A DNA stretch of 64,000 nt from Asterias rubens (Eukaryota): assembly GCF_902459465.1 (NCBI RefSeq), contig NC_047070.1, positions 10,602,001-10,666,000 of the forward strand, read 5' to 3'. The position numbers and the translations under genes were made by a program. The notes below the pieces were generated by a model, which was not told the DNA's origin, made no database searches, and saw only the letters and a program-made list of their open reading frames with translations. Positions within the stretch are counted from its first letter, which is position 1. The number at the start of each line of letters is the position of its first letter. Shown piece by piece: positions 8,401 through 27,000 of the stretch.

Positions 8401-11400
8401 CCGTCCAAGACAAAATCACTGTCTGCAAGATTCCATGGACGAATTTGGACCTGGAAGAAGAGAGAGGAGGAAATGAAACAAAATAACTCTCAGTTGCCGT
8501 TTGTGTCATCAGTTATACCAATTTATAACATTATAACATGTAGTTTTCCAATTACATGTATCTTGCTCACTTAAAGGCAGTGGACACTATTGGTAATTAC
8601 TCACAATAATTATTAGCATAAAACCTTCCTTGGTAACAAGTAATTGGGAGAGGTTGATGGTATAAAACATTGTGAGAAACGGCTCCCTCTGAAGTGAAGC
8701 AGTTTTCGAGAAAGAAGTAACTTTCCACGCATTTGATTTCAAGACCTCAAGTTTAGAACTTGAGGTTTAGTAATCAACCATCTAAACACACACAACTTCG
8801 TGTGACTCGTGTGTTTTTACTTTCATTATTATCTCGCAAGTTCGATGACCGACTGAGCTCACATTTTCACAGGTTTGTTATTTTATGTTGAGATACACCA
8901 ACTGTGAAGGCTAGTCTTTGACAATTACCAATAGTGTCCACTGCCTTTAAATATACATTGGAACTTTTCACCCTGATTTCAGAACCCAACCCCAACGTGT
9001 ATTTTGGAATATTCATCTATAGTGTCAGTTGCATTTTCCAGATGTTTTCTAATTCTTTTCCCAAATGTTTTATTATTTTTGTTGAAAATCGACATACACT
9101 GAACTGGCCAGTAAATTTTGACTTCCATTTCAACCACAGACTTCAGGATTTTGAGTTGAGTACGGTCTTAATTAATCAAAATACCCCTCAAAATCAGCAA
9201 AGGAATTTAATCAGTTCGGGTAGCACCGTGCTGCACGGTTTATTTTAGGTCACCGACGGGAAACATTAGTTTAACCGGTCAAATAAATCTGTGAGCAGAA
9301 AATAACCCGTGAGCCATACTGCATCATCGAGAATATCCTTTTTAAATTAAGCGTCACTCCTAAGAGAAAACACTGCAATAAGTATAGCACGGTGTCTATA
9401 TTTATCCGGTGTTTCCTTCAGGACGGGTTGAAGGGAGACACTTCATAAAATTACTGGTGAATCATTCAACCCAACCACCCCCCCCCCCATGTCCTGCAAC
9501 CCATAAACACACTTCAGAAAGACAAAATAAAGGTCAATACTTTCTGATCATACTAGACCCAATTCTTGTGGTTAGGGCCTCTCGTCTTAACGATTTGATT
9601 TCGTCTTCCTCTTCTATTTCTTTTTCGCTCAGAATTACAGATGAGCCACTCGATGCTCGAATGCTGTGCACGCATATTTTGAGGGTGTTGGCGCGGTCAT
9701 GAAATATACATACAAGGGGTACGAATTCATGACAGGGTTCGAGGGCTCCGGGGCGATCAGCTGTGAATATGCCCAGCTGAGTCTAAATTTAACTCCCAAT
9801 TTATCGGCAAACAGAGAAAATCTTTCCACCCCAAGGGAATTGTAATCTGGAAAACATTACCGTGACACCACAGAGATTGTGCAATGACATTTATCAAACG
9901 ATTTGGTCTAAAGATAGCGGCTAGTAATCTCAAGTCCAATATTGTAAAGCCTGTAAGCAGACATTTTTAGCCAAAACAGTGAGTGCCCTCTGCAGAATTT
10001 CTACTTGATAGCACTGGTTATGGTTTGCAAGTCAAAAGGCAGTCAACTTGCCAGCATTTTTCGCTGACAAAATGAGGTGGTTGCAGATCATACCGCATTA
10101 GAGGAAGATAAAATATTGACTCTTACCGAGATGTCTTCACGAAGGAAAAATGTTACACGACGGTATGTACAGACTATTGTGGACATTTTTTTCAATTCCA
10201 GTAAGAGTAACCAAACCGATGTTGGATTCAAAATTAAGCTGTGTCCAAACAAGCGACTGCGGATTGATCACAGCATTAACATAGTTTAAACATATATGAT
10301 GCCCATAGCATCACCCTTAGCAACAAGCACAGCTGTAGCCGCAGCTGCCAATTCAGTCACGGCTGAAGTCTAGCTCCAGGTTTCTTGCAAACAACTACGT
10401 CACAATGGGCAAAATGGTACCAGACTCGTTTTCTTTCCCGCTTCAGTCTGGTTACAGGATGGTAATAGTTTTTTCCCCGCACAAACACACACACATAAGT
10501 CAGGGCACAAGACAGGAAACTTACCGGTTTGTCCTTGATGGTTGGACTCGAGACGCAAAGATAAAGTTTATCTTCCTCCTTGATGCATGCCTCGATCAGT
10601 GCCTGCACAGACCGCTCATCTTGGAACAGGAGGAATGCATAACCTATAGGGAGAATGTCATGCACTGTAAACATCACACATAGAATTCTGTACATTGGCA
10701 AAAGGTCACGTACATTAGAGTACAGTATATTTAGTGAATGGTCGGTACTCAAATATAAAAGATGTACCAGATCAGCAGAGCTTAAATACAGAGAGAGGGA
10801 GAGATACATAAAGACACACAGAAAAAGATCACCACCAACGACAACAACAAAACGAGTACAGATAGTTACATTTTTTAAGGAAACCAAAGTATCCAAAACC
10901 ATGTATGCCTGGGATGGGGCCAGGGACAATGATCATGATTTACATGATGAATATGCTGACAAGTTCTGATGAGCTGGTAAGATCCAGCCTTACAATTTAT
11001 AAAGTGTCTTTATGCCTCAGCTCAAATAAAGTCACTTGCATGTCAGTTCAGGACCCCAAAACCCCCAGAACTGTTTCAATGCAATACTTGAGATTAGAGC
11101 AAAAACAGTCACCTCTACATGTAGCTTCAGGTGAATTGACAGGGTTTTGACATAGATTGTTTTAAATGTTTTGTCATAAGTGTCTTTTTGTTGATAGCAT
11201 ATATAATTTTCTGTTTTTTTAGTTTTGGTTTTTGAGCAAGTCTTTTCAAGGTAGACAATTGCTGATCCTGAAGAGCAGACACTTTTCTTTTTCCTTCAAT
11301 CCCCCCTCCATGGCCCCCTGCTGAGTTATTTTTCTTGGCGATAATAATATTTGAAGCATTTCCCATACACAATGAAAAAAAACCTCTATACATGAATCTA

Positions 11401-14400
11401 AAATATGCCCTTCCACTTCCTCTGAAGATGGTTGTGCTGACGTCAGCAGAAAGCATCCGTGTATGAGGGAGCGTTGTTTTGTGTATCCCTTCTTTTTAAA
11501 AGACAGTCATGGTTGATGGCAGTGCTTCAAAGTTTGCAATCAGATCCGAGGAGTGTCCTTTCATGTGGCATCTTGTGCACTCCTTCATATCACAAGACCC
11601 ATTATGCTATCGCTTCAGATAACCAGTCTGCAAGGCTGCACCAGGAGAGAGCTGTGTTTTGCCTTCTCAGTGCGACACACTTATAACATGTCTGTTTTAA
11701 AGTCGCCCTGGATTTGATACAGATTGGATCTCTGTCACCCCTCAAGTGCTTTAGAAACCCTCTTCATAAGGAGGGAGGGGGGGGGCTGGGAAGAAATCAA
11801 GGTGAGGAAATAAGAGTCTTTGTGAACAAAAAGCGTGATTCACTGAATGGCTAAAGTTTGACAATACTGTTGGGCCAATGTTACATGATATCCAGCATGA
11901 CAAGACGAGGTACAAAATATGGCAGTGCTAAATGAGAACACGAACACAGTGTGTAATGGGATAGGTCTGCAAAGAGAATCCAGATCAATTCATTGAGATG
12001 GGGTACTTTTGTGTCTCTCTTTTTTTTTACCTTTGGGTGGGAAATATGACTTGCTCTCAGCTTTGTGGGGCCAGTCAACAACCAGGCTGCCAAACCGCCG
12101 AAAGCTGGCTGTGATCTCCTCTGCAAAAAACGAAAAACAGAATTTAAGAAAGTTACAATAAGCTTTACCCTCTGCCAAAATACACAGAAAATACTATATT
12201 CTCTGCTGCAGAACTAATTTGTTGCCAGTATGAGAGGAGTGGGTTCATACATGACCTACTTCCATAATGCAATTATTAAAAAAAAGATCCATAAGAGTAT
12301 TTGTAACTCAGCCATGTATATGAGTTGATATTTTCCAAGCACTTCACAAATATAGATGGACGTGCGATATAATTTCCTTCTTTTAGGGGAAACAATTTAC
12401 AGCATGAACAATTGTTCTTGCATACAAAAATTGCTTTGGAAAATATTGTTGTATTTTTTGTTTTGCCTGATGCCTGATCATTCCTACTAAATCCTAACAA
12501 CAAATGCAGTCAACAACCAAAATCAATGGAAGTTGGTTGATAACATTGAACACAAAACTACATGTATCATCAGGTAGACTGTTTCAAAAGTTGAACACAC
12601 GTGTAATCCCAATGCCAAATTTTAGGATCTCTTCTGTGACCTGATGCTCACAGAGCTTGATATGACCAAACATTTGAGAGAGTGATGATATCAAAAATCT
12701 GTCTTCTTAAGCAGCAGAAATTGATCTCACCCATTAATTGTTCCCTGATCGCCACTTGACCTTTTAGGCATGGTAGATTTTGAACACAAAATATAATTAC
12801 TCCTTAATTCTTTCATCAATTCGTACAAGAACCATAACCCTGCTTTAATAACATATCTTTTTTTTTTTTTTTTTAATTACAAAACTAATTTGCGGCAATT
12901 ACAGGATCAATATGAAATGAGAAAGTTTTAGACGTGGGAGAAAAACCCCACTGGGGAAAACCCACGCAATCAAGGCCCAATGTCAAGGCTCCTCTTATTA
13001 AGAGGGCTGTATGTAAGCACAGAATTCCCCAGTAAGCAGAGCCAGGAAATTGGGTCCAGGTAAGGGACTGAAAACCTGATCCATATTCAAGGCTCTGGTC
13101 TGACTGAGGTGGGATTCAAACCAGGGTCCATAGAGGTGAGAGGCAGGGAAAGAAACCACTGATGAGCCAACCAAGTCGGCAATGATGTCATGATCTACAC
13201 CATGCACAAAATATGACCTTCTTTATGGTCTAAGGAACTATTTTAGGAAGTCTAGTTTACACACTAAACGCAATGATGTAATGATCGATATCATGCATAA
13301 AATGTGACCCTTCGTGATTGTCTCAAGGAACTATTTTAGTCTACACATTTATTCCACTAAACACAATTTTGGAAAACAGACATTTAGTTTCATTCGTTGG
13401 GATAGCATCAATGATGGGAGTGTGCCCCCCGTTCAATGCAAAGTGTTGGTTATGGTTCAAGGGAGCCACGCCTAGAATTGATGTAAACTCACCGAAGCAT
13501 TAAAGCATTCGGATATATAAAGCTACGGTAGTGACCAGTGAGTTCTTTCAGGTCGTTCACTGCTGGTTACCCATATTGTTCGTGTTTTCCTTATATGAAG
13601 TTCTGATAGTGTTATGGCTAATGCAGAGGAGCACGGTTCTGCTTTAAGCACTGAGCTTTTGTTTGAAAAGTTTCAGAGTTATTTCGACAAGAAATTCGAC
13701 AAGTTGGCTAACTCCACTATCACAGATGAAACAGCGGTGAAGGAACTCAAAATAAAATTGGAAGCGAAGGAGTTGACCAAGCCCGGTAATTCTGCCCAAT
13801 TGCTGTTTTGTGGACAGCTAGAGATTATTCTAGATAAAATAAAAGTCGCCTTTTTGCAGAAGGGTGATACAGACAAGGTCGTCGAAGCTATTCACGAGGC
13901 TGAGGACCTTTTAGCGGATAGAAAGCAAAAGATCAAGATCGCTGATAGCAGTAGAGCAGGTTGGATCACCATTCAACAGTTAGAGAAGGGCGGCAAGAGA
14001 GACCAGTCTTCCGAAGATCAGAAGAAGGTGCAGATAGCTGAGGACGCTGCTCTCAAAGAATTGGAAGGAAGAAAGAAACAAAAGACTTCGGATAGACGAC
14101 AGCAAGATGGGGTGGTTTTCAAGAATTTTGGTGACCGTAGTCTTTTTCGAGGTAAAACGTTAAATTCCCCCTTTTGTCTTTGGTTGTTTCAAAGGGCATC
14201 TGAATCCTGGCCCTTATCCAAAGTTGTCATTAAAATAATTCAGAAATTGAATCATTTTGTCGTATAGTGTAATCATTGAGGCTGTTCTTAGAATGAAACT
14301 GTTTTTCATGCGGATGAGCGAAGCGAAGGAGCATGAAAATTTAGTTTCATTCGTTGGGATAGCATCAATGATGGGAGTGTGCCCCCCGTTCAATGCAAAG

Positions 14401-17400
14401 TGTTGGTTATGGTTCAAGGGAGCCACGCCTAGAATTGATGTAAACTCACCGAAGCATTAAAGCATTCGGATATATAAAGCTACGGTAGTGACCAGTGAGT
14501 TCTTTCAGGTCGTTCACTGCTGGTTACCCATATTGTTCGTGTTTTCCTTATATGAAGTTCCAGTTTTTCTCGCTGTTTGTATTTTTTCTCATTATACATT
14601 TTAGGCATGCCAAATGATGTGTGTTTCAGCTGCAGAATGCCTGGCCACTGGGCCCGGGAGTGTCCCTACGCAACAGGCCCCCCACTGTCACACCGAGTCC
14701 GATCCCGAGCTCAGACGGCTCTTCCCCTTGGATACAACACTTTCCACTCCAGAGGTGTGTCGGTTCCATGGCAAGCTCCCGCCTTTCATCGAACAGGGTA
14801 CAACTTCCTACCAGCAATTGCGGGAACCACGCCCACAGGCTCATTCAAGCCCGCAGAGTCAATTGCAGCGCCATCAACGTCAGGCTCAAGCGTCTCTTAA
14901 GGTGGCAAGCCTGTCACATAAGTTTGCTGACGTGTTGGAGGTACGATGTGATTATCAGGATAGCAGTATTAAGAATTTAATTTCTGATAAAGTCAATGTG
15001 AAAGGCAGGTTACGAGCTCACTCACAATTTTGGTTTCATATAGGGGCATCATCCATGGTTTTGTCTGTTATCAATGAGGGTTACCGCATTCCTTTCATTA
15101 CATCACCACCATCCATGTTTTTCAAAAATAACAAGTCGGCAATTAAGGAAGATTCCTTTGTGACGGAGACAATTTCAGAGTTATTAAGCTCTGGTAGAAT
15201 AGAAGAAAAATTAAACCCTTCATTTGTTGTCAATCCCCTTTCTGTTGCATATCAGGCATCTGGTAAAAGAAGGTTGATTTTGGATTTGATTAACGTAAAT
15301 GAGTATGTCCCAAAGATGCATTTTAAATTAGATGACTGGAAAGTAGGTCTTCAATTTCTTTCAAAGAATGCTTACTTGTTTTCATTTGATTTGAAATCAG
15401 GGTATCACCACATTGATATCTCTTCCGACTATCAGAAATACTTGGGTTTTTCTTGGATCATAAACAATGTTCGCAGATATTTTGAGTTTACTGTTCTTCC
15501 ATTTGGGTTGTCTTCCGCACCATTATTATTCACCAAGATGATGAAACCACTCGTGACCCACTGGAGATCGTGTGGCATTCTCATTGCCCTGTACTTAGAT
15601 GATGGTTTTGTGGTGGTACCTGCTTCATGTGATAATAACACAAATGATTTTCACATTGCAAGTAAAATCTCCCAACATGTAAAAGTTGATTTGATAAGAT
15701 CTGGTTTAGTTTATAACATGGACAAATCCTGCTGGAATCCTGTTAACCAAATTGTTTGGCTTGGCATGCATTGGGACTCCGTAGAGGGCACTTTGCGAGT
15801 TTCCCAGAGGCGCGTTGATAAAATTCTGCGCACTATCAATGAGTTGACTTCTGCAGACGTTGTCACAATTCGCAAGCTACATTCTTTTGTAGGCCAGATC
15901 ATATCTCTGGGCCCTGTTGTTGGTAATTTAACTAGACTATCCACTAGGAACTGCCAAGTGAAAATATCACAGGCTCATCATGAAGACGATATTATCAAAC
16001 TTGATAATTTGTGCTTGTCAGAAATTGAATTTTGGAAGAGTAATGCTTCAAAAAGAAATGTGCGTTATCTATTTGTTTCCACCAGAGTGAACAAGATAGT
16101 ATGTGGGGATGCAAGTGCAGTGGGATCTGGTGCTATATTATGTAATGATATCCATACAGCTCACAAAAATTGGACTGAAGTTGAGGCAAAAAGAAGTTCC
16201 ACTTGGCGAGAATTGGATACAATACTATTTGCAATTTCATCATTCCTGCCAATAGTATCCAATTCACAACTCAAAATCTTCACAGATAGTCAGTCAGCAG
16301 CTCGTATAGTGGAAGTAGGAAGCATGAAGGTGGATTTACATAGTTTGGCAATTGATATTTTCAATATTTGTATTAATAACAATGTGCGTCTAGAAGTAGA
16401 ATGGATACCAAGAACCATGAATGACAAAGCAGACTTTGTCAGTAGATTGATCGATTTAGATGATTGGATGATTTCAGACAAATTCTTCAGCATAATCAAT
16501 GATACATGGGGTCCTTTCTCAGTTGACTGTTTTGCAAGTTATTATAATGCTAAAGTGTCCCGCTTCTTTTCCAGATTTTGGAATCCAAATACAGCCGGCG
16601 TAGATGCCTTAGCACAGGATTGGTCAAAAGAGAATTGTTTGTTAGTGCCCCCTGTACTTTTGATCCCTAGTGTTCTAAGACATTTGTACTTATGTAAAGG
16701 CAGAGGAGCCCTTGTTTTCCCCTGGTGGCCCTCCTCCCCCTTTTGGCCTTTGTTATGGTCTTGTTACAGAACATGGATTACGGGAATGATAACTCTTGAA
16801 GGTTCAGACATCTTAGAGTTGGGGAATAACAAGAATTCTTATTTGGGCTCAGATACGTTTACTAGTCCAGTATGTGCCATATATATTGATTGTACTGAGA
16901 TTTGATTAAGTTACATGAGTTGATTATTTATTCTTAATTAATTTTCTCTTAATTGCTGTATAGGTCATTCGCAGTCAAGATTTTTGGTCAAGCTTTCCCA
17001 ACAGTATAGACGCATTCAAGGAACAAATTTTTCAGGATATTTTGTTAGCCAAAGCAGAGAGTACTCTAAACAGTTATCTTTATAAATGCAGAGATTTTTT
17101 TCGCTTGGTTGGTTGCTCATAAAATTCCTCTCCGATTCCCAGTTCAAGACACTGTTGTTGCTGCTTTTATCATCGATAAGAGTAATTTGTCGCAATCTGA
17201 AAGTTCAATAATTACGATTTCCGCTGCAATTAAATGGCTTCATTCTCTCCTGAATATCGAGTCAAACCCAGTAGACTCTCCACTACTGAAACAGATTGTA
17301 ATCAGCCAAAGAAAATCACTGCATAAACCCCCAGAGCAGAAGGAACCTTTAACAATTGATCATGTGAGATCTATAGCTGATAAATTCGCTAATCAAGAAA

Positions 17401-18001
17401 GTAGTCTCATACAATTAAGGACGGCTTGTTATGTGACGTTAATGTTTTCTCTTCTGTTCAGACACGATGAGATGGCACAACTAAAAGCATGCCACATCAC
17501 TGAATTAGAAAATCAAGCCGGGTTGAGAATTTTTATTCCCCGTTCTAAAACGGACATTTTTAGAGATGGCAACACTACTTTTCTGTCGTGCACACAGAAT
17601 ACTTACTGTCCAGTAACAATGTTACGTAGATATATGCATCAATGTGATATACAATGTGGCGAAGATGTGTATGTATTTACAGCCTTATCATTTCATTCGA
17701 GCACAAAATCTTACAAACCGGTAAAGCACAAACCTCTTAGTTATACCAGATGCAGGGAAATCTTTTTAGATGCAATGAAACAAATTGGCATAGAGCGTCC
17801 GCAGTCTTTTGGTTTACATAGCATGCGTTCTGGAGGCGCTACTCATTTGGCCAATAAGGGTATATCGGAAGAGTTAATCATGCAGCATGGTAGGTGGAAA
17901 ACCCAACAAGCCAAAAACAGGTACATTAAGCGGGATATAGAAACTCGCTTGGCCTTATCGAGGTCTCTGTGCGAAAAGTAAAGGAGTTAGAATTGATTGG
18001 T

Positions 18002-18062
<61 letters not shown>

Positions 18063-21000
18063 TTCGGTGAAGAGAAATGGACTGAGGACAAAGTTCAGTA
18101 GAGCCTCAAGGGCCAAAGTTTCATGATTGGAACTTGAGAGAGGTGAATTCTTTGTTATTAATGAGTTTTTTGGCCGGACAGATAATCCGAAGAGCCGTAA
18201 GGGCTAAAATTCCTCGGTGGAATTATTGGTGATATTGAATTATGTAATTTCTTTTCAAATAGATTTTCAATTGAAATGTATCATGAAAAATTATGGATTA
18301 TTAGTTTCATATTTAATGAGTTGTCAAAACAGTATTTTGCTTATAATTTAATCTGAATGTTTTTAAAGAAATAATATTATTGTTATAAATTACTCCAGGG
18401 TAATCGGCATCTGAATCCTGGCCCTTATCCAAAGTTGTCATTAAAATAATTCAGAAATTGAATCATTTTGTCGTATAGTGTAATCATTGAGGCTGTTCTT
18501 AGAATGAAACTGTTTTTCATGCGGATGAGCGAAGCGAAGGAGCATGAAACTTCCATGAAAATCTAACGAAGCCCATCCACAAAATACACTGAATACACAT
18601 AATCTATAGGTTTATGCATGTAGTATCAGAACCACAAACCCATTTTTGCAACTGAAGTTAAAGGCAGTGGACACTATTGGTAATTGTCAAAGACTATCCT
18701 TCACAGTTGGTGTATCTCAACATATGCATAAAATAATAAACCTGTGAAAATTTGAGCTCAATCAATCATCGAACTTGCGAGATAATAATGAAAAAAAAAA
18801 CACCCTTGTCACACGAAGTCATGTGCGTTTAGATGGTTGATTTCGAGACATCAAGGTCTAAATCTGAGGTCTCGAAATCAAATTTGTGGAAAATTACTTC
18901 TTTCTCGAAAACTATGGCACTTCAGAGAGAGAGCTGTTTCTCACAATGTGTTATACCATCAAACTCTCCCCATTACTTGTCACCAAGAAAGGTTTTATGC
19001 TAATAATTGTTTTGAGTAATTACCAATAGTGTCCACTGCCTTTAACAGTAAATACGTACCAAAATAAAACAACTCACAAAATGAGCTTGAAGTTAATAAA
19101 TATTTCTCACAGTAAACTAAAGTTGACTTGTCAACCAAAGTTAATATTAATCAGAGCAAACAGATCAGCTTATTGGTGGATCCGTGCCTCTTATTTTTAT
19201 ATCGTAGGCAGACATTTTGCTGGCACACTTAAAGTAATCTTTCTGATTCAATATGTCCTAAACGAAAAAATACATGGATCACAATCTGGATCGTTTAATT
19301 CAGAGTCAACCCACGCTCTTTCTACCCACCTTCATCAATATCAGGAGGTAATCCACCCACAAACACTTTCCTTGAGAACCTTTCAATTCCATAGTCCGGG
19401 TTCGATCGGGGTGAAATATGACCCGGCGAACTCAGGGATGGAACAATTTGATCATGGCGGCCATCATCCAGCAAACCATCTGCAATTAACAAATAAATGT
19501 AGTTTTCATTAACATACAGATTGGATATCACTTCTGTTTGGAGTGAAATTTGAAATTTAAAAACAGGGCATCACAAACGCAATCAAAAATATAAAATTAT
19601 TAATTAAAGCCACAATTTATTTATTTTATTTCAAAGAGAACCCGACATTATAACAAATTTAGCAATTATGCACTATCCTAAATGCATTGATAGTTAAATA
19701 TTCCACAACAAACTTGATAGTGAAAATAATGTGTAAATTTATTGTCAACAAAACATCAATATACGATGAAATTATTATCACAAAAGAGATATGGTCATCG
19801 TAAGGTGCCATTCAAATTATTATAGTCAATGTTTTTTAACATTGACAAGAAGAAGAAGAAGAAGAAGAAGAAATACCCAGCTGGCCAAGATCATCATCAT
19901 TTGTGACTAAACCACACAGCTCGTTTGTTAAAGACACGAAAAACCATTAAAAATGCCTGATGTTAGAGATCTTTTGTCTAATACATATAGTTCAGATGAG
20001 GCATAATTACTTTGTTCTTCTGTAATATAATATTATAATATGAAGAAGCCATTCAACATTTAAAGATCTAAATTTGGGGCAGTTGACTAGGTGGGTCAAA
20101 CTAATTCAGAAAAAAACAATCAACATTTTAGAACATTAACAAATCTGAATGGCCCCTTTAATGGATATTTCTAATAATAAAAATGCTTAATATTTCTGTC
20201 AAGAATATTATATAAGTGTACTGCACACATCTACCTGTGCATAAAACAAAAGCCATTGCACACACTTTCTCGTTTCCTCTTTCGTAGTCACATGAAAAGC
20301 AATATTTTAAGTGGCTGAAGAGATGAAGATTTATGCCGGTGGTTGCATGTACGCAATCGGATTTCCCTGGCAACTAAATGTTAATCACACTGCTCAGCCA
20401 GGGCCAGCTGTTTTATCTTATTTGCTAGGGCTGCAATAATACAAACGATGTATGACACCGAGATAATACAGTGTACATGAATATTGTGTTTTTGTAGTTG
20501 GCTGCTGAAAATTGCAAAACAGACGAATGCGCAATTTCCCTCTATATATTTACAGTTGGGTGTAGTTACAATTTACATAACTAGATATAGAAACATATTG
20601 TACCTGCCCTTAGAATATTCGGATATCATTTAATTCAATTCAAAAAAACTTATTTCAAGAAACTGCTAATTAAATAGCATTCCCCATCCAAAAGTCTAAA
20701 GCGTAAAAAACCTTGGTACATCTAAAAAGAAAAAAAATTTAAAAAAAGGACACCGCACCGTAGAAATTGTAATGATTTTTCTTTTAGCAACAAAACACCA
20801 GCTGGTGCGTTTCCATGCACAAGAAAATATAATGTGATTATCACACCTTTCTGTGGTGGTAATTAGGTTGTTTTTTGTGCCACAGCTTAGATACGTACGT
20901 ATAAATACACACAACATCATGGGAAAATACAATCTGGATATTAGTCATACAGTAGTACGTACAGTATAAATTTAATCATTTTGAAAATATGTGTATTGTC

Positions 21001-24000
21001 TTGTGAAATCAATTGATATAAATAGATAATATGGATCACCAACAGCCTAAATTCACTTTTGCATCTTAAAACGCAAAAGGCTACTTTTGCGTCTTAAAAC
21101 GCAAAAGGCTACACTGACATTTGTGTATTAAGGGTACAATGTGTAGTCTCTATGCTGTATGCATACATGTACATATTGATTACATTTGTTTTAGGTTTTG
21201 AGATGGTTTTGGTTTTGCCATTATGTAAATATACATTGTGTATTGCATATACATTTGCATTGTGTGTACAGTAATGACAGTACGACAGCTGATCAGCCTG
21301 CTGATAGACTTTAAAGGAACACGTTGCCTTGGATCGGTCGAGTTGGTCTTTGAAAAGCGTTTGTATTCATTTGTTATAAAATGCATGATTAGAAAAATAT
21401 TTTAAAAGTAGAATATAATGATCCACACAAGCATCACTCGAAATTGCGTGGTTTTCCTTTTACCTCGTCGACAAACACGGTCGGCCATTTACGGGAGTCA
21501 GATTTTTGACTCCCATAAATGGCCGACCGTGTTAGTTCGCAAAGTAAAAGGAAAACCACGCAATTTCGAGGCAAATGTGTGTGGATCATTGTATTCTACT
21601 TTTAAAACATCTTTCTAACCATATGCATTTTATAACAAACGGTTACAAAGGCTTTTCAAAGACCAACTCGACCGATCCAAGGCAACGTGTTCCTTTAATA
21701 GCTTGATGCAATCAAAGGCCATATAATTACTGTACAGCTAATTAACATTAGAGAAAAGCTACCATGCATTCCACATAATGAGATTCGGATAATAATAACC
21801 CCACCAAGGTCCGACACAGATGACCTAGGCCAGCAATGAAGGCTTATAATTTATGATTAAATTATTAATCATTTGTTTTTGCGTAAACTCAACGCTAAAA
21901 GATTGTAGGAATGATTGTGCACCTTATCCAGTACCATGTACAAGATAGAATGTAAAATATGAAATGTGTTTAGCCTACATAGTGCAGGTGGGTGGGTCCC
22001 ACCAGGCTAATGCTTGTGTTTAGCCTACATAGTGCAGGTGGGTGGGTCCCACCAGGCTAATGCTTGTGGGACAGACAGTTCCCTGGTAGTAATAAAACAG
22101 AGTAATATGCTGGTTACAATTGCTGCGTTCATTCAGCACCCCAATAAGAGAATTTTGTTGTAGAAATTTAATACAAAATTAAATTTGATGAAAATAACAA
22201 CAATTTATCTTGTTATTTAAAAGAAATTTGCAGTGTTTTAAATTCTGGGGACAGTATGGGATAAAAATACATCTAAGGTGACGGCACTTGTCTAGAACCA
22301 TCTTGTCTATTTCACCTTCTAATTGTCTACACATACCAGGAGGCTTGTATGACATTTTGCTTTCTAAATTTATAAAAAGCTATTTCAGTATACTAATTAA
22401 AAATAGCCTAAATATTATTCATGATATTACTATTAGTCAAGTTCTGCAGTTCTTCCATTTTTACTTTAATTACAGCCCATCCCATCAATGTATTTAAACG
22501 TAGTTAACAATTTCGTCTAAATACCTTGTGACACATTTATTGCTCAATTATATATATTTTTTTTTAGTGAGGGGATAAGAACATTCATTATACGCCACTG
22601 GAAAACCCGGGAAAAAAATTATCTCAACTTTCCCACGCCTTAAAATGTCATGAAATATATGCACGAGTGCAGAGAAAGACCTTGTAGAGTATTAAGCCAG
22701 CAGTATTTAACTACACATGTGTTGCAATTGCAGACAAAATTAAATTCAATAAAGGCCTTCATGAAATTTTATATGGAAACAATCTAAATATAAATTGCTT
22801 TCCAGACAGTCCTGCAATAAGGGTGTTTAAAAAGGGACTTGAAGTCCAAACTCGTTCTTCAATCCACCTGCATTTGAGAATCTATTTTCCAATCTCAACA
22901 AGAAGCAGGGGGAGACAGTGTGGGATGCAGACGACGGGGGACGAGGGGCTTCAGCCCCCCCTTGGCTAAACGCTTTTCTGTTTTCCATAGCCACACTATG
23001 ACGTCAATGGCAGGCCTTTCAGCACAGGTTAATTCTAGGTTCGTAATTATGGCCCGATGTGGGTTGTGTATTGATTGCACACTGTCAGAGTGTCCACACC
23101 TTCACGTGTGTATGTACAGAGCGTTGGTTTGGGACAGTGTGGCACGGTCCCATTGCACCGAAATGAAATGGCGCAGAACGGATACTGTTCTAGCCAGTGG
23201 GCTCACATGAATAATAATGAAGGAATCTATTTGTGTCGTTAACACACCCTTGCATTAATCAAGCAGTTGGACTAGTACAAAATTTAGTTCAATCATTAAA
23301 AATTTTGTCTCTTCACCACTATTTCTAAAAAAAATTACATTTAAAGAATTATGCAATTTCTTCACTTCAGTTTGTTATTCTTTACATTTCTCATAGTATT
23401 GTAACAAATTAACATAATAAGTAATTGCATTCCTTCCCCATATTAAATTGGATATAATGAAACACTGATCAAATTATTACTTCTTATTTTGAGGGTAATT
23501 ATATGGAAATTTCTGTGTGGGTGTGTTTGTTTGTTATACATGTATGTCAGCGTCTGCAGAGCTGAAACGTATAACATAAATTAAAATTAATAAAAAAATT
23601 GCATGGTGAGAAAATATTTTGGGCGCCACTCACCACTCATTATCCAAACCCAACATTAATATTTTCCTCAAAGCCGCAGGCACATTTACGAATTCAACGA
23701 AGGAATCTATTAAATATTAGATTTCAATCTATCTAATCCATCAAGCTTATTTACAATTCTAAGTGTAGCTTGGGGACCAATGAATCAGAGTTCAGCTGCG
23801 GGTGTCCCCCATCCTCATGCAAATACGTAGTGAAACATACCCTCGCAGGAATGGGGATTTTCCTAAGTGAAGGAACACAATTTTCTTGGTAAAAACATGA
23901 ACTTTGCACATTTTCCCATACTTCGTTCATAAGCTCTGATGTAAAGTAAGGAATCTGAAGATAAGGCAGTTTAATAATATGCAAGGTGACTCAGTCTGGT

Positions 24001-27000
24001 GAATTTACAGTATAAATTTATGCAATATAATGACTTAATGCCACTTATTTAATCAGATTCTTAAAATTCAGCATAAAAAAAAGTGGACCCTGATTTAACC
24101 CAAGATTATACAGAAGGGTAGTTGCCCAAAGACCCGCAGTAATAATATAATTATGCCATATGCAGGAATATTATCAGTGCATGTTAAGCCTATGAGATAG
24201 GGAGAACGGACTGTACACAGTCTAGGGTCAAATGTGACCTGGCTGTACATACAGTTCGTACGTACAGGTGTATACAATTATGCATGAAGGCTTTATTCAG
24301 TACAATTTATTATGCCTGGTACGTTACAACATACTGTACATTACAATATGCACAGGGAGATTTCTCTTGTATGTATGACATAACATTGCGCTACGCAGAA
24401 ATTTGTCAGATACTACTCAAAACTATTATTCTTTCTCAATATTATTGAACATTCATTTTACAATTGTTTTCAAATCAACGTTCTAGTCTTTTATTTGGCT
24501 TTGCAAAATACACGAAATAGGTCAACCAAGGGGGGCAAAAATCCTGTTTTTCGTTTTAATTATTTCTGAATTGATTGATTTCCACCCATTAACCTGGTTC
24601 AAAATGGGTTTTTCATGGTTAGTAATTTGTCTGACCTTTTTACGGAAGCCAATTGGAGGAGAAAACAACTTTCAAATCAATACACATAAAAATGTGGTAA
24701 ATGTATTTATAGACAATTTTGAAAACAATTTTTAAGAAAACATCACCTCACAATTAAAAGCATTTTAAGAGCAAAATTGTAAAGGCTGTGCACACTGGTT
24801 TTATTCAATGACACAAAATGGGAAAAGATACCCCACAAAATAATATGATAATGATGGATTTTGATGCAGGCTGTGAAAATTAAACCAAAAACACAGGGAT
24901 AGAGCCAATTTCTCAATCTGCATCCGTGTTCCCAGGATGCAGATTGAGAAATTGGCTCTAAGTGTAATCTTTAAAAATGGTTTTAAAAGTTCAAAATATC
25001 CCCCAAAAATGTTGTGAAATATTTCACAATGTTCTTGACGCTTTATACACAGTTCAATGTCAAGGGGTAGAAGTCTCAACAGTTCAGTTGGGTTCCATCA
25101 ACAAACAACAAAGCAGAGAACCTCCCCTACACAATCCCAACGCATCCATACAATAGGCATTGTTGACAGGGGACTCAAATCTTCGTAACGCTATAACTTG
25201 TTCATACACTTTGTAAGGAGTGCAAGGTTGACAGAATCACAATGCATAAAGTTCACACCAATTTGTTTTCATAAAATAATGGGGTTTTTTTTAAAGGTTT
25301 TTTATCTTGAGTGTACTTTGGAACAGGGCAGGCCTGGGCCACCTCCCACAACTAACTCAGAATAGATATTACGATACAGAAATGTACAAAGCACAATATT
25401 AAAACAATGCCAAAACATGTTCTGATGCACAATCAACTGGCATCTGTAAAATTACAGTCAAAGTTTATTCACTTCATGGGTACGCTAAATGAAAAAAACT
25501 TTTTGTAATAAAAAAGAATCGCAGGTAAGCTAGCCATTTAAATAAAAATGTACCACTACCTATCAAAAGCTAGGTACTAGACAAGGCTACAGTGAAGGTT
25601 TCATATTAAAATACATACACCTCTAGGTTGTTTTTCACAAATTATAAAACAGAACTTCTGTTTAATTGCATGAATAATACTTCGCCGCGACATGACCATA
25701 ACAATTTCAAAGTTCCTGTTTTTCAGGCCTGATTATCAAGAAGGCCAAGGAGGCCATGACCTCTTTGCCCTGGTCTTGGCCTCGGTGCCCCGTCCAAAGT
25801 TGACTGTAAGATTTGGAGTGTGCCCTTTGCAAAATGAAAATGGCCTTGCCCTTTCAAAAGATGAAGCTCCAGGCCTAGAATACATGTATGTCTTGCACAA
25901 AATCTAAAGAAGAAAATGTTTACTAAACAAGTGCATTTAAATATTTTCCCATTAACAATGAGGGAATCAATGTGTGGTGAAGAGGTTTTCAACTAGTGGT
26001 TTAATCCCAACGAGGCCTGGTTCTTGACAATGTTACCGAGACGAAGTCGAGGTAAATTATCAAGAACCAGGCCTCGACGGGTTTAAACCACTAGTTGAAA
26101 ACTGATTCAACACACTTTGATTCCCATTCATAAATACCTTTTTTGGTAAAAAACATCAACACTTTTTGGTCAAAAAGTAAAATAAATGTCAAAATTATAA
26201 TTGTTCAATGATTTCTTTCAACACAACACCCCTCCAGCTATGAAATGGTAAGGCCCTCGGGTAAACAACTTCTTATAAGGAGATTGCTGCGCATGTCACG
26301 CGTATCGCGTGATGTGGTACAACTGTTTCAGCCATTCCTCTTGACCAATAGGAATGAAGAAACTCTTATAAGAACAGGTGCAAGTTCGCGTGTCACGCCC
26401 ATGTTTCAACACTTTTTACTGGTCATAAACAAAGGTTTATACACACCCACGTGACGCGCTCTCCACCCATAGGAATAGCGAAACTGTCTGAGGTATTTAT
26501 GAATGAATAATTAACCACCAAAGAATTGAGACTTCTTCCTAGAATGTGACATTCAGTACCATGACAGTTGACAATCACATCTGTCTATTATAATATGACA
26601 ATCAGTAACATCTGTCCCAATGGAATACATGCACAGACATGCAGAAAACCATCTTCTTTCTAAACAGGATGATGTGCATAAAAGCCATACAGGAATTACA
26701 TGTACCTGAGCATAGAGGCTTATTTTTAGCTGGGCATGGAAAAATAGAAAAGATATATAACGAACAGCGCACTTCAGCCAAAACAGCTGCACAAGGATTA
26801 TTTCTAGAATTGCACTTTTTGTTTATGGTTGATGTTGTTCGAAACACCTGTGAAAACCAATGGATATTATCTTGTAGCACGCGCTAATCCACCAATCAGA
26901 TGCTCAAACTGGAGGGTGATAAGGGTGTAACAAACCTCCCATAAAATATAAAATGAAAAAGTAAATGGCGTTATTTGGAGGGGAAAAAAAAACAGTACTG

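Follow-up and report, generated by a model that had tools for sequence, protein, structure and literature searches.

A PAT-like tyrosine-recombinase retrotransposon of Asterias rubens carries its internal repeat junction inside a spliced gag intron

We examined a 64,000-nucleotide (nt) stretch of the Asterias rubens genome (NC_047070.1, positions 10,602,001 to 10,666,000; hereafter the window), which contains at 13382-18549 a retrotransposon of 5168 base pairs (bp), its limits set by inspecting the junctions. A repeat finder run on 12500-19500 returned exactly two direct-repeat families, A and B, and no inverted-repeat families. The two A copies are identical at 222 of 222 positions, and the two B copies differ by a single mismatch. 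The first B and the second A adjoin in a 366-bp block that lies within a gag intron and fills it except for 43 nt at the 5' side and 44 nt at the 3' side. From 5' to 3' the element consists of A1, gag exon 1, an intron with B1+A2 between its GT and AG, the CCHC exon together with pol, a tyrosine recombinase (YR) and B2. The initial annotation had proposed this order, and its repeats and frames were reproduced here. The features of the element, in window positions and with a slash at exon boundaries, are as follows.

13382..13603, + strand: A1 repeat, 5' end of the element (222/222 identical to A2); TATATAA box at 13514-13520
13614..14151, + strand: gag exon 1, 179 codons plus 1 nt, phase 1; ends ...SLFR/G
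14152..14604, + strand: intron 1, 453 nt; G/GTAAAA ... polypyrimidine tract-TTTTAG/GC
14195..14338, + strand: B1 repeat; ATTAAA poly(A) signal at 14229-14234
14339..14560, + strand: A2 repeat, identical to A1; same TATA box at 14471-14477
14605..14900, + strand: gag exon 2, CCHC zinc knuckle and C-terminal tail; stop at 14898-14900
14614..16905, + strand: pol open reading frame (ORF), 763 amino acids (aa): reverse transcriptase (RT), RNase H and putative Dam-like methyltransferase (MT); +1 frame relative to gag
14941..16963, + strand: probable intron 2, 2023 nt; donor KFADVLE/GTACGA, acceptor CTGTATAG/
16964..17981, + strand: tyrosine recombinase ORF, opening right at the intron-2 acceptor
18003..18060, + strand: internal A-run, 58 nt, 22 nt past the YR stop
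18406..18549, + strand: B2 repeat, 3' end of the element; ATTAAA at 18440-18445

Domain content was assessed with Pfam. The zf-CCHC match (9.3e-6) lies in exon 2 and is present only in spliced Gag. The pol ORF matched RVT_1 (1e-17), RT_RNaseH_2 (0.003; 18.0 bits, under the curated cut-off of 29.8 bits) and the Dam-like MT (2.1e-5; 24.7 bits, under the cut-off of 28.1 bits), the last of which is recorded on many homologues. No rve or endonuclease match was returned by Pfam for pol. Phage_integrase matched at 17109-17978 (2.9e-11). The element shows the traits of the DIRS order, with a YR in place of a DDE integrase or endonuclease and an RT/RNase H of the Ty3/gypsy-like type, as well as those of the PAT or Pat1-like group, with split direct repeats (A1..B1A2..B2) and a zinc finger in Gag. 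It is a PAT-like (Pat1-like, PAT superfamily, DIRS order) tyrosine-recombinase retrotransposon of A. rubens. The internal A-run measured 58 nt in the window copy and 36-54 nt in other copies; shorter A-runs upstream of B2 were seen in Patiria (L044, 10670-10690) and in a metagenomic relative (L046, 10699-10712).

Splicing determines the form of Gag that can be made. The gag ATG lies at 13614, and without splicing the frame closes after 217 aa (13614-14267) with the knuckle absent. Removal of the 453-nt intron fuses the two halves of gag in frame (...SLFR-G-MPNDVCFSCRMPGHWAREC..., with exon 2 reading G-MPNDVCFSCRMPGHWAREC), adds the CCHC knuckle and gives a Gag of 277 aa. A full Gag from spliced RNA and a 217-aa product from unspliced RNA had been predicted in the initial annotation, and both were recovered from the frames.

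The initial annotation had also called for RNA across 14151-14605, and we aligned the contigs of four sequencing runs (X1, X2, X3 and X19) to 13300-18650. An X19 contig carried the joint 14151>14605, which has GT..AG borders, skips 453 nt and was covered at a depth of 30.8, compared with 69.9 for exon 1. Contigs ended exactly at 14152 in both X19 and X2, and another X19 contig began at 14603; these are the points at which spliced and unspliced forms part, and the breaks therefore fit splicing. Unspliced contigs spanned the donor in X1 and in X3, the latter a true metatranscriptome. The spliced junction sequence had 0 matches in the genome assembly at up to 3 mismatches. We read X19 as RNA or RNA-dominated: its contigs amount to 139 megabases (Mb) against a 417-Mb genome, it reaches a depth of 30 on a junction found once in the assembly (that of an internally deleted copy, described below), and an equally deep DNA library would assemble the whole genome.

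Gene models placed splice sites at homologous positions. The A. rubens protein XP_033640406.1 (LOC117300733) equals the predicted spliced ORF of a sister family (L038, on C17) at 216 of 216 aa, and its model uses a donor and acceptor homologous to those of intron 1. In the Patiria miniata RefSeq models LOC119734034, LOC119723154 and LOC119735646, ..LFRG runs straight into the CCHC exon; at the first two of these loci A1 is followed by gag exon 1, then by B1A2 and then by the CCHC exon, with B1A2 within the intron. Both spliced and unspliced forms are thus present in contigs, while the DNA copies that have both exons all contain the intron. Intron 1 is real and is spliced at 14152/14604.

Copies of the element were sought in the 417.6-Mb assembly. 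Five were full-length and 99-100% identical; one was internally deleted (element positions 1329-2924) and retained both gag exons; three comprised just the A2-B2 portion (A-[pol-YR]-B), with an internal deletion in one of the three; one was a 957-bp A-gag exon 1-B copy (L011); and one was a 178-bp A..B remnant. All copies that hold exon 1 and exon 2 (6/6) had identical splice-site contexts and a 453-nt intron, which makes the layout neither chance nor a one-off rearrangement. No full-length or other copy with the intron precisely removed was found in the assembly. Such a copy, or a junction located elsewhere, had been named beforehand as contrary evidence; all six two-exon copies keep intron 1, and in all copies, in the sister families and in Patiria the junction lies inside the gag intron.

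Coding capacity was well preserved among the full-length copies: spliced gag encodes 277 aa and pol 763 aa in 5/5, and the YR frame is open for 338 codons from the acceptor in four of the five. In the window copy the YR frame breaks after 52 codons at a one-base length difference near 17095, with gag and pol intact; the difference sets it apart from the other four full-length copies and from the contigs of the four runs, each of which is one base shorter at 17095. Within-copy repeat identity, together with the 99-100% identity between copies, indicates very recent activity. As is typical of the DIRS order, no target-site duplication was seen in the flanks of the 11 copies, and the 5' flank often ended in AA.

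Derivatives with clean ends came in two forms, A-[CCHC/pol/YR]-B of 4.2-4.4 kilobases (kb) and A-gag exon 1-B of 957 bp (L006, L007, L008 and L011 in one series; L033, L035 and L041 in another). No permuted A-pol-YR-BA-gag-B copy was present among the copies found, which argues against equal use of the two junctions. The 178-bp remnant (L019; G000:C1:31640569-31643704, oriented 1459-1636) consists of 42 nt of A and 136 nt of B, and a host sequence of about 22 bp, agttactgcaatcctagcacca, occurs at each of its two flanks; other insertions are without duplications. A joint at 14709/16306 that skips 1596 nt in X2 and X19 corresponds to the internally deleted copy at G000:C12:6026468-6030018, which is probably transcribed in both runs. 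In X2, an RNA-like run, the A repeat (14337-14560) was joined to a foreign upstream flank, TATTATAATCTCTCAAAAGGTTTAACTT, at a depth of 234, about 5x that of the rest of the element, which points to strong expression of some other locus with an A repeat in it.

The intron layout was conserved well beyond the window element. Layout, donor, acceptor and phase 1 were kept in at least five diverged families of the A. rubens genome, in two Patiria families and in two distant metagenomic lineages. The conserved splice context is LFR/G^GTA.. at the donor and Y-tract-YAG^GC at the acceptor. The diverged families of A. rubens were 44-63% identical to the window element in Gag exon 1 and 65-72% identical in coding DNA; Patiria miniata RefSeq proteins were 46-61% identical in gag exon 1, and the gag tail motif ..FHSR..PWQAP was conserved in Patiria. 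In the two metagenomic lineages, L046 and L054, identity to the window element fell to 24-29% in Gag exon 1 and 45-47% in pol; such low Gag identity with the same layout suggests that the arrangement is old. L054 has the same splice motif, with A2 within the intron.

Intron 1 measured 453, 431, 484, 481, 501 and 481 nt in the A. rubens genome, 427 and 477 nt in Patiria and 501 nt in L046. Its length was not a multiple of 3 in five of these nine, and splicing restored the gag frame into the CCHC exon in all of them, counting a degenerate copy (L031) that has a frameshift of its own in exon 1. The read-through tails vary by family, with a stop 16 to 136 nt beyond the end of homology. In three families exon 2 opens in the gag frame with TTG rather than ATG, so that the knuckle requires exon 1.

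These observations dispose of the weakest alternative, in which splicing plays no functional part, the 217-aa product serves as Gag, the knuckle is made as a separate peptide and the GT..AG pair is there by chance: in the window element's family a 97-aa CCHC ORF could begin with the ATG at 14607, but with TTG at that position in three families, site and phase conserved while intron length varies modulo 3, read-through tails that differ in length between families, a spliced joint in X19 and spliced RefSeq models, we regard this reading as hardly credible.

Relatives with another layout were also found. In L047, from a metagenome, the order is A1-gag-pol-YR-B1A2-130 nt-B2 and gag is uninterrupted, knuckle included. 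In L045, from Amphiura filiformis, A2 lies downstream of YR and gag is one ORF, reading FFRG...CFSCG. A word-indexed search with Patiria Gag returned asteroids only, and distant Gags required a profile search; this was run exhaustively with three Patiria Gags, and its hits carry no taxonomy. Close hits ended at positions ~176-187, which is read-through into the intron, and many distant hits extended through the knuckle in one stretch. In this sample intron and junction are either both present in gag or both absent from it. The intron layout could have arisen once according to an RT tree of nine elements, whose key branch is weak. The initial annotation had held that the internal junction normally lies toward the 3' part of such elements. 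L047 does have that placement, and L045 has its A2 3' of YR, but it is one of several placements that are known (PMC4157794).

The repeats carry signals that may define transcript ends. A poly(A) signal (AATAAA or ATTAAA) lies ~30-35 nt into B1 in 6/6 asteroid families with a complete B1, and no canonical poly(A) signal was found in B1 of L046. A TATA box lies ~110-130 nt into A in four of the eight families checked. Judged from these positions, transcripts should start at ~13540-13550, leaving out the first ~160 nt of A, and the RNA should end inside B2, leaving out the last ~90 nt of B. A2 is a candidate internal promoter. With a poly(A) signal in B and a TATA box in A, both an internal terminator and an internal promoter would lie within the gag intron. 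Across families whose coding DNA is 65-70% identical (window, L034, L036, L038, L044 and L053), the final ~45 nt of B show 87-96% conservation. They include a conserved 9-bp inverted repeat, TTTTCATGC-N19-GCATGAAAA, a terminal hairpin at 14303-14339 whose last base is the first base of A2; it is likely a recombination or priming site.

The B1 poly(A) signal, at 14229, follows the gag donor at a distance of 77 nt. In the HIV-1 5' long terminal repeat (LTR), and in U1 telescripting, a nearby 5' splice site suppresses a promoter-proximal poly(A) site. The element resembles the HIV-1 5' LTR in having a poly(A) signal shortly past a donor and, by this analogy alone, the gag 5' splice site might let the polymerase read through the B1 poly(A) site.

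Expression of YR probably involves a second intron. The pol frame opens exactly at the intron-1 acceptor, and its ATG, located 10 nt into exon 2, is shared by the other families, the degenerate L031 copy excepted. Upstream of its catalytic domain the YR ORF lacks an ATG, and it opens directly after a pyrimidine tract and AG in every family. A donor, KF.DVL[EQK]/GTA, is conserved at a pol-frame codon boundary ~109 codons into pol, and the acceptor immediately precedes the first YR codon; splicing between the two would fuse YR in frame to a leader of 109 codons from the start of pol. In Patiria, the segment from the ATG at 9010 to 9309 joined to 11323-12438 reproduces exactly the length of the annotated 471-aa integrase, and isoform X2 of the gag gene uses the same intron-2 donor/acceptor pair. 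No RNA joint for 14941/16963 was seen in the contigs of the four runs, where an X1 contig ending at 14940 was the only hint. On balance we lean towards an intron 2 at 14941-16963 that fuses a pol-frame leader to YR.

Two other arrangements were considered in this region. An intron at 16870-16963 (GTATGT..TATAG) was rejected: the peptide VCAxYIDCT is conserved between families, and RNA-like contigs pass through. A stop-start overlap, in which the TGA of an upstream ORF in A2 overlies the pol ATG (ATGATG at 14614), was dropped as a general mechanism because it is not conserved in the L034 family. In that family the gag ATG itself lies within A.

Taken together, these features make it quite likely that splicing separates the Gag mRNA from the genomic template by means of the junction-bearing gag intron. 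A transcript running from A1 to B2 would be short of ~160 nt at the outer end of A and ~90 nt at that of B, and the internal B1-A2 junction would be the only complete copy of those ends. These are just the parts for whose restoration the published PAT/Ngaro model requires B1A2 (PMC6681497). Spliced RNA, with exon 1 joined to the CCHC exon, would encode the full 277-aa Gag and lose B1A2. Unspliced RNA would keep B1A2 and serve as template for reverse transcription and end repair, while encoding only the knuckle-less 217-aa Gag. Only intron-containing RNA would then yield complete progeny, so that the intron could not be lost by retrotransposition; intron 2 would provide a subgenomic mRNA for the recombinase. 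On that model, and given where the TATA box and the poly(A) signals lie, we infer that B1A2 would be indispensable and spliced RNA dead for replication.

Several observations weigh against this interpretation. The sole explicit spliced joint comes from X19, a run without a recorded library type, and the shorter arm of that joint is 27 letters. X19 also holds 64% of a control stretch (20000-27000, mostly unique and ORF-poor); it is the depth argument that carries the reading of this run as RNA. Contigs cannot reveal RNA ends, strand or abundance, and the RefSeq models are computed predictions whose supporting evidence is not visible. Contigs of X2 and X19 continue past B2 into flanking DNA, a poor fit to termination in B2. 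No circular or cDNA intermediate has been observed. Finally, junction-less A-[pol-YR]-B copies are common, making up 3/10 in the window element's family and 3/5 in the L034 family; either the repeats recombine frequently or junction-less units still integrate, and resolution of a two-junction circle could also explain such copies.

The proposal can be extended to a clade of Pat1-like elements, in asteroids and at least two other marine hosts, in which the junction would be an obligatory intron within a two-intron, retrovirus-like programme. Removal of intron 1 would complete Gag and removal of intron 2, taking out RT, RNase H and MT, would allow the recombinase to be expressed, with the B1 poly(A) site possibly silenced by the 5' splice site and A2 possibly driving a subgenomic pol/YR mRNA. 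We offer this fuller version tentatively, as possible rather than expected.

A related alternative gives promoter choice, and not intron-1 splicing alone, the task of separating functions. A2 would also fire: RNAs from A1 would give spliced Gag and genomic RNA, and RNAs from A2, beginning ~100 nt before exon 2, would give pol and, after intron-2 splicing, YR. A2 equals A1 including its TATA box. On full-length RNA pol and YR sit behind the long gag ORF and many AUGs, and the pol-frame ATG is kept in the families compared (L031 excepted), including where the gag residue that overlaps it is H rather than N; the Patiria 471-aa integrase model begins at exactly that ATG. Read-through from A1 might occlude A2, however, and the pol frame is open from 14038 in spliced exon 1, so that a +1 frameshift from gag could also reach pol. 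This arrangement would complement the splicing-based separation and, as a proposal in its own right, seems to us somewhat doubtful.

Retention of the intron could instead be of a generic, retrovirus-like kind, in which the intron is real and persists since unspliced RNA is packaged, and the position of B1A2 is a frozen accident. Retroviruses, Cer1, BARE and Arabidopsis Ty1/copia are reported to keep splice sites in this way (PMC10309623, PMC3735527, PMC5580714), and the probable intron 2 is conserved to the same degree although no repeat lies in it. Against an accident, the splice sites lie within ~30-75 nt of B1A2 on each side in 7/7 lineages checked, and the sampled relatives with the junction or A2 3' of YR have no gag intron at that site. 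We consider generic retention unlikely.

A still less probable explanation treats the element as a heterodimer, a tandem of separately integrating A-gag exon 1-B and A-CCHC/pol/YR-B units joined head to tail by the recombinase. Both units do exist alone with clean ends (L011 at 957 bp and L006/L007 at 4.2 kb, with L033, L035 and L041), but single units are equally explained by A1/A2 or B1/B2 recombination or by resolution of a two-junction circle. Moreover, donor and acceptor, which would sit in separate units, co-evolve so as to keep one Gag frame across lineages, and only one order of the two units is seen (5 full-length copies, 0 permuted). These points make a heterodimer very improbable.

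The fuller two-intron version, if true, would make this the first described spliced member of the DIRS order, in which a replication cis-element and an intron became one unit. DIRS-order replication is debated, with circular and linear single-stranded cDNA intermediates both under discussion (PMC7192593). The coincident junction and gag intron would be a natural marker in this debate: each new copy has to come from unspliced RNA, sequence data give direct access to the proportions and the fate of the two RNA forms, and the derivative copies (two forms of A-x-B and A-y-B type, none permuted) constrain models of the intermediate. Gag and YR of such elements are invisible to ORF annotation that is blind to introns, a possible reason why PAT elements have been reported with 'missing' zinc fingers or with YR ORFs that lack a start. 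The element would also be an example of an intron arising around, and locked in by, a mobile element's own cis sequence.

Parts of this picture are already known, namely PAT-like elements, the varying placement of their internal repeats (PMC4157794), and the separation of mRNA from genomic RNA by splicing, which is standard in retroviruses and known from Cer1, BARE and Ty1/copia. We found no description of an intron in any DIRS-order, PAT or Ngaro element in the searchable literature; the founding SpPat1 papers lay outside that search and may contain a prior mention. The Pat1 group is defined by a zinc-finger Gag, RT-RNase H-MT, YR and split direct repeats (PMC4157794), and the zinc finger in Gag separates it from Toc and kangaroo. 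The element resembles PAT of Panagrellus redivivus and SpPat1 of Strongylocentrotus purpuratus in its knuckle Gag, RT-RNase H, same-strand YR and A1..B1A2..B2 repeats, and probably in a Dam-like MT. Nematode-form and echinoderm-form Pat1 differ in the placement of the internal repeats, which lie between MT and YR in the nematode form (PMC4157794); in the present element, by contrast, splicing removes the junction, which is placed within gag.

Ngaro and VIPER elements (A1-[ORFs]-B1A2B2) share the split direct repeats, and in the replication model proposed for them the internal B-A copy restores the missing transcript ends (PMC6681497, PMC8547959). The 3' placement seen in L047 is of their kind. 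They differ in having no MT domain, a junction downstream of YR and an uninterrupted gag.

In retroviruses and in the LTR elements Cer1, BARE, Arabidopsis Ty1/copia and Drosophila copia, unspliced RNA is reported to be the genome and spliced RNA the mRNA, so that retrotransposition leaves the splice sites in place (PMC10309623, PMC3735527, PMC5580714, PMC5035971). The element differs from these and from retroviruses in what splicing achieves: there Gag is made from unspliced RNA or splicing removes pol, whereas here splicing completes Gag. Retroviral packaging signals reach beyond the major donor into the env-mRNA intron, and the element would be like retroviruses in placing a replication cis element between splice sites. 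Unlike in retroviruses and LTR elements, the intron here holds the putative end-repair repeat junction, and integration is by a tyrosine recombinase.

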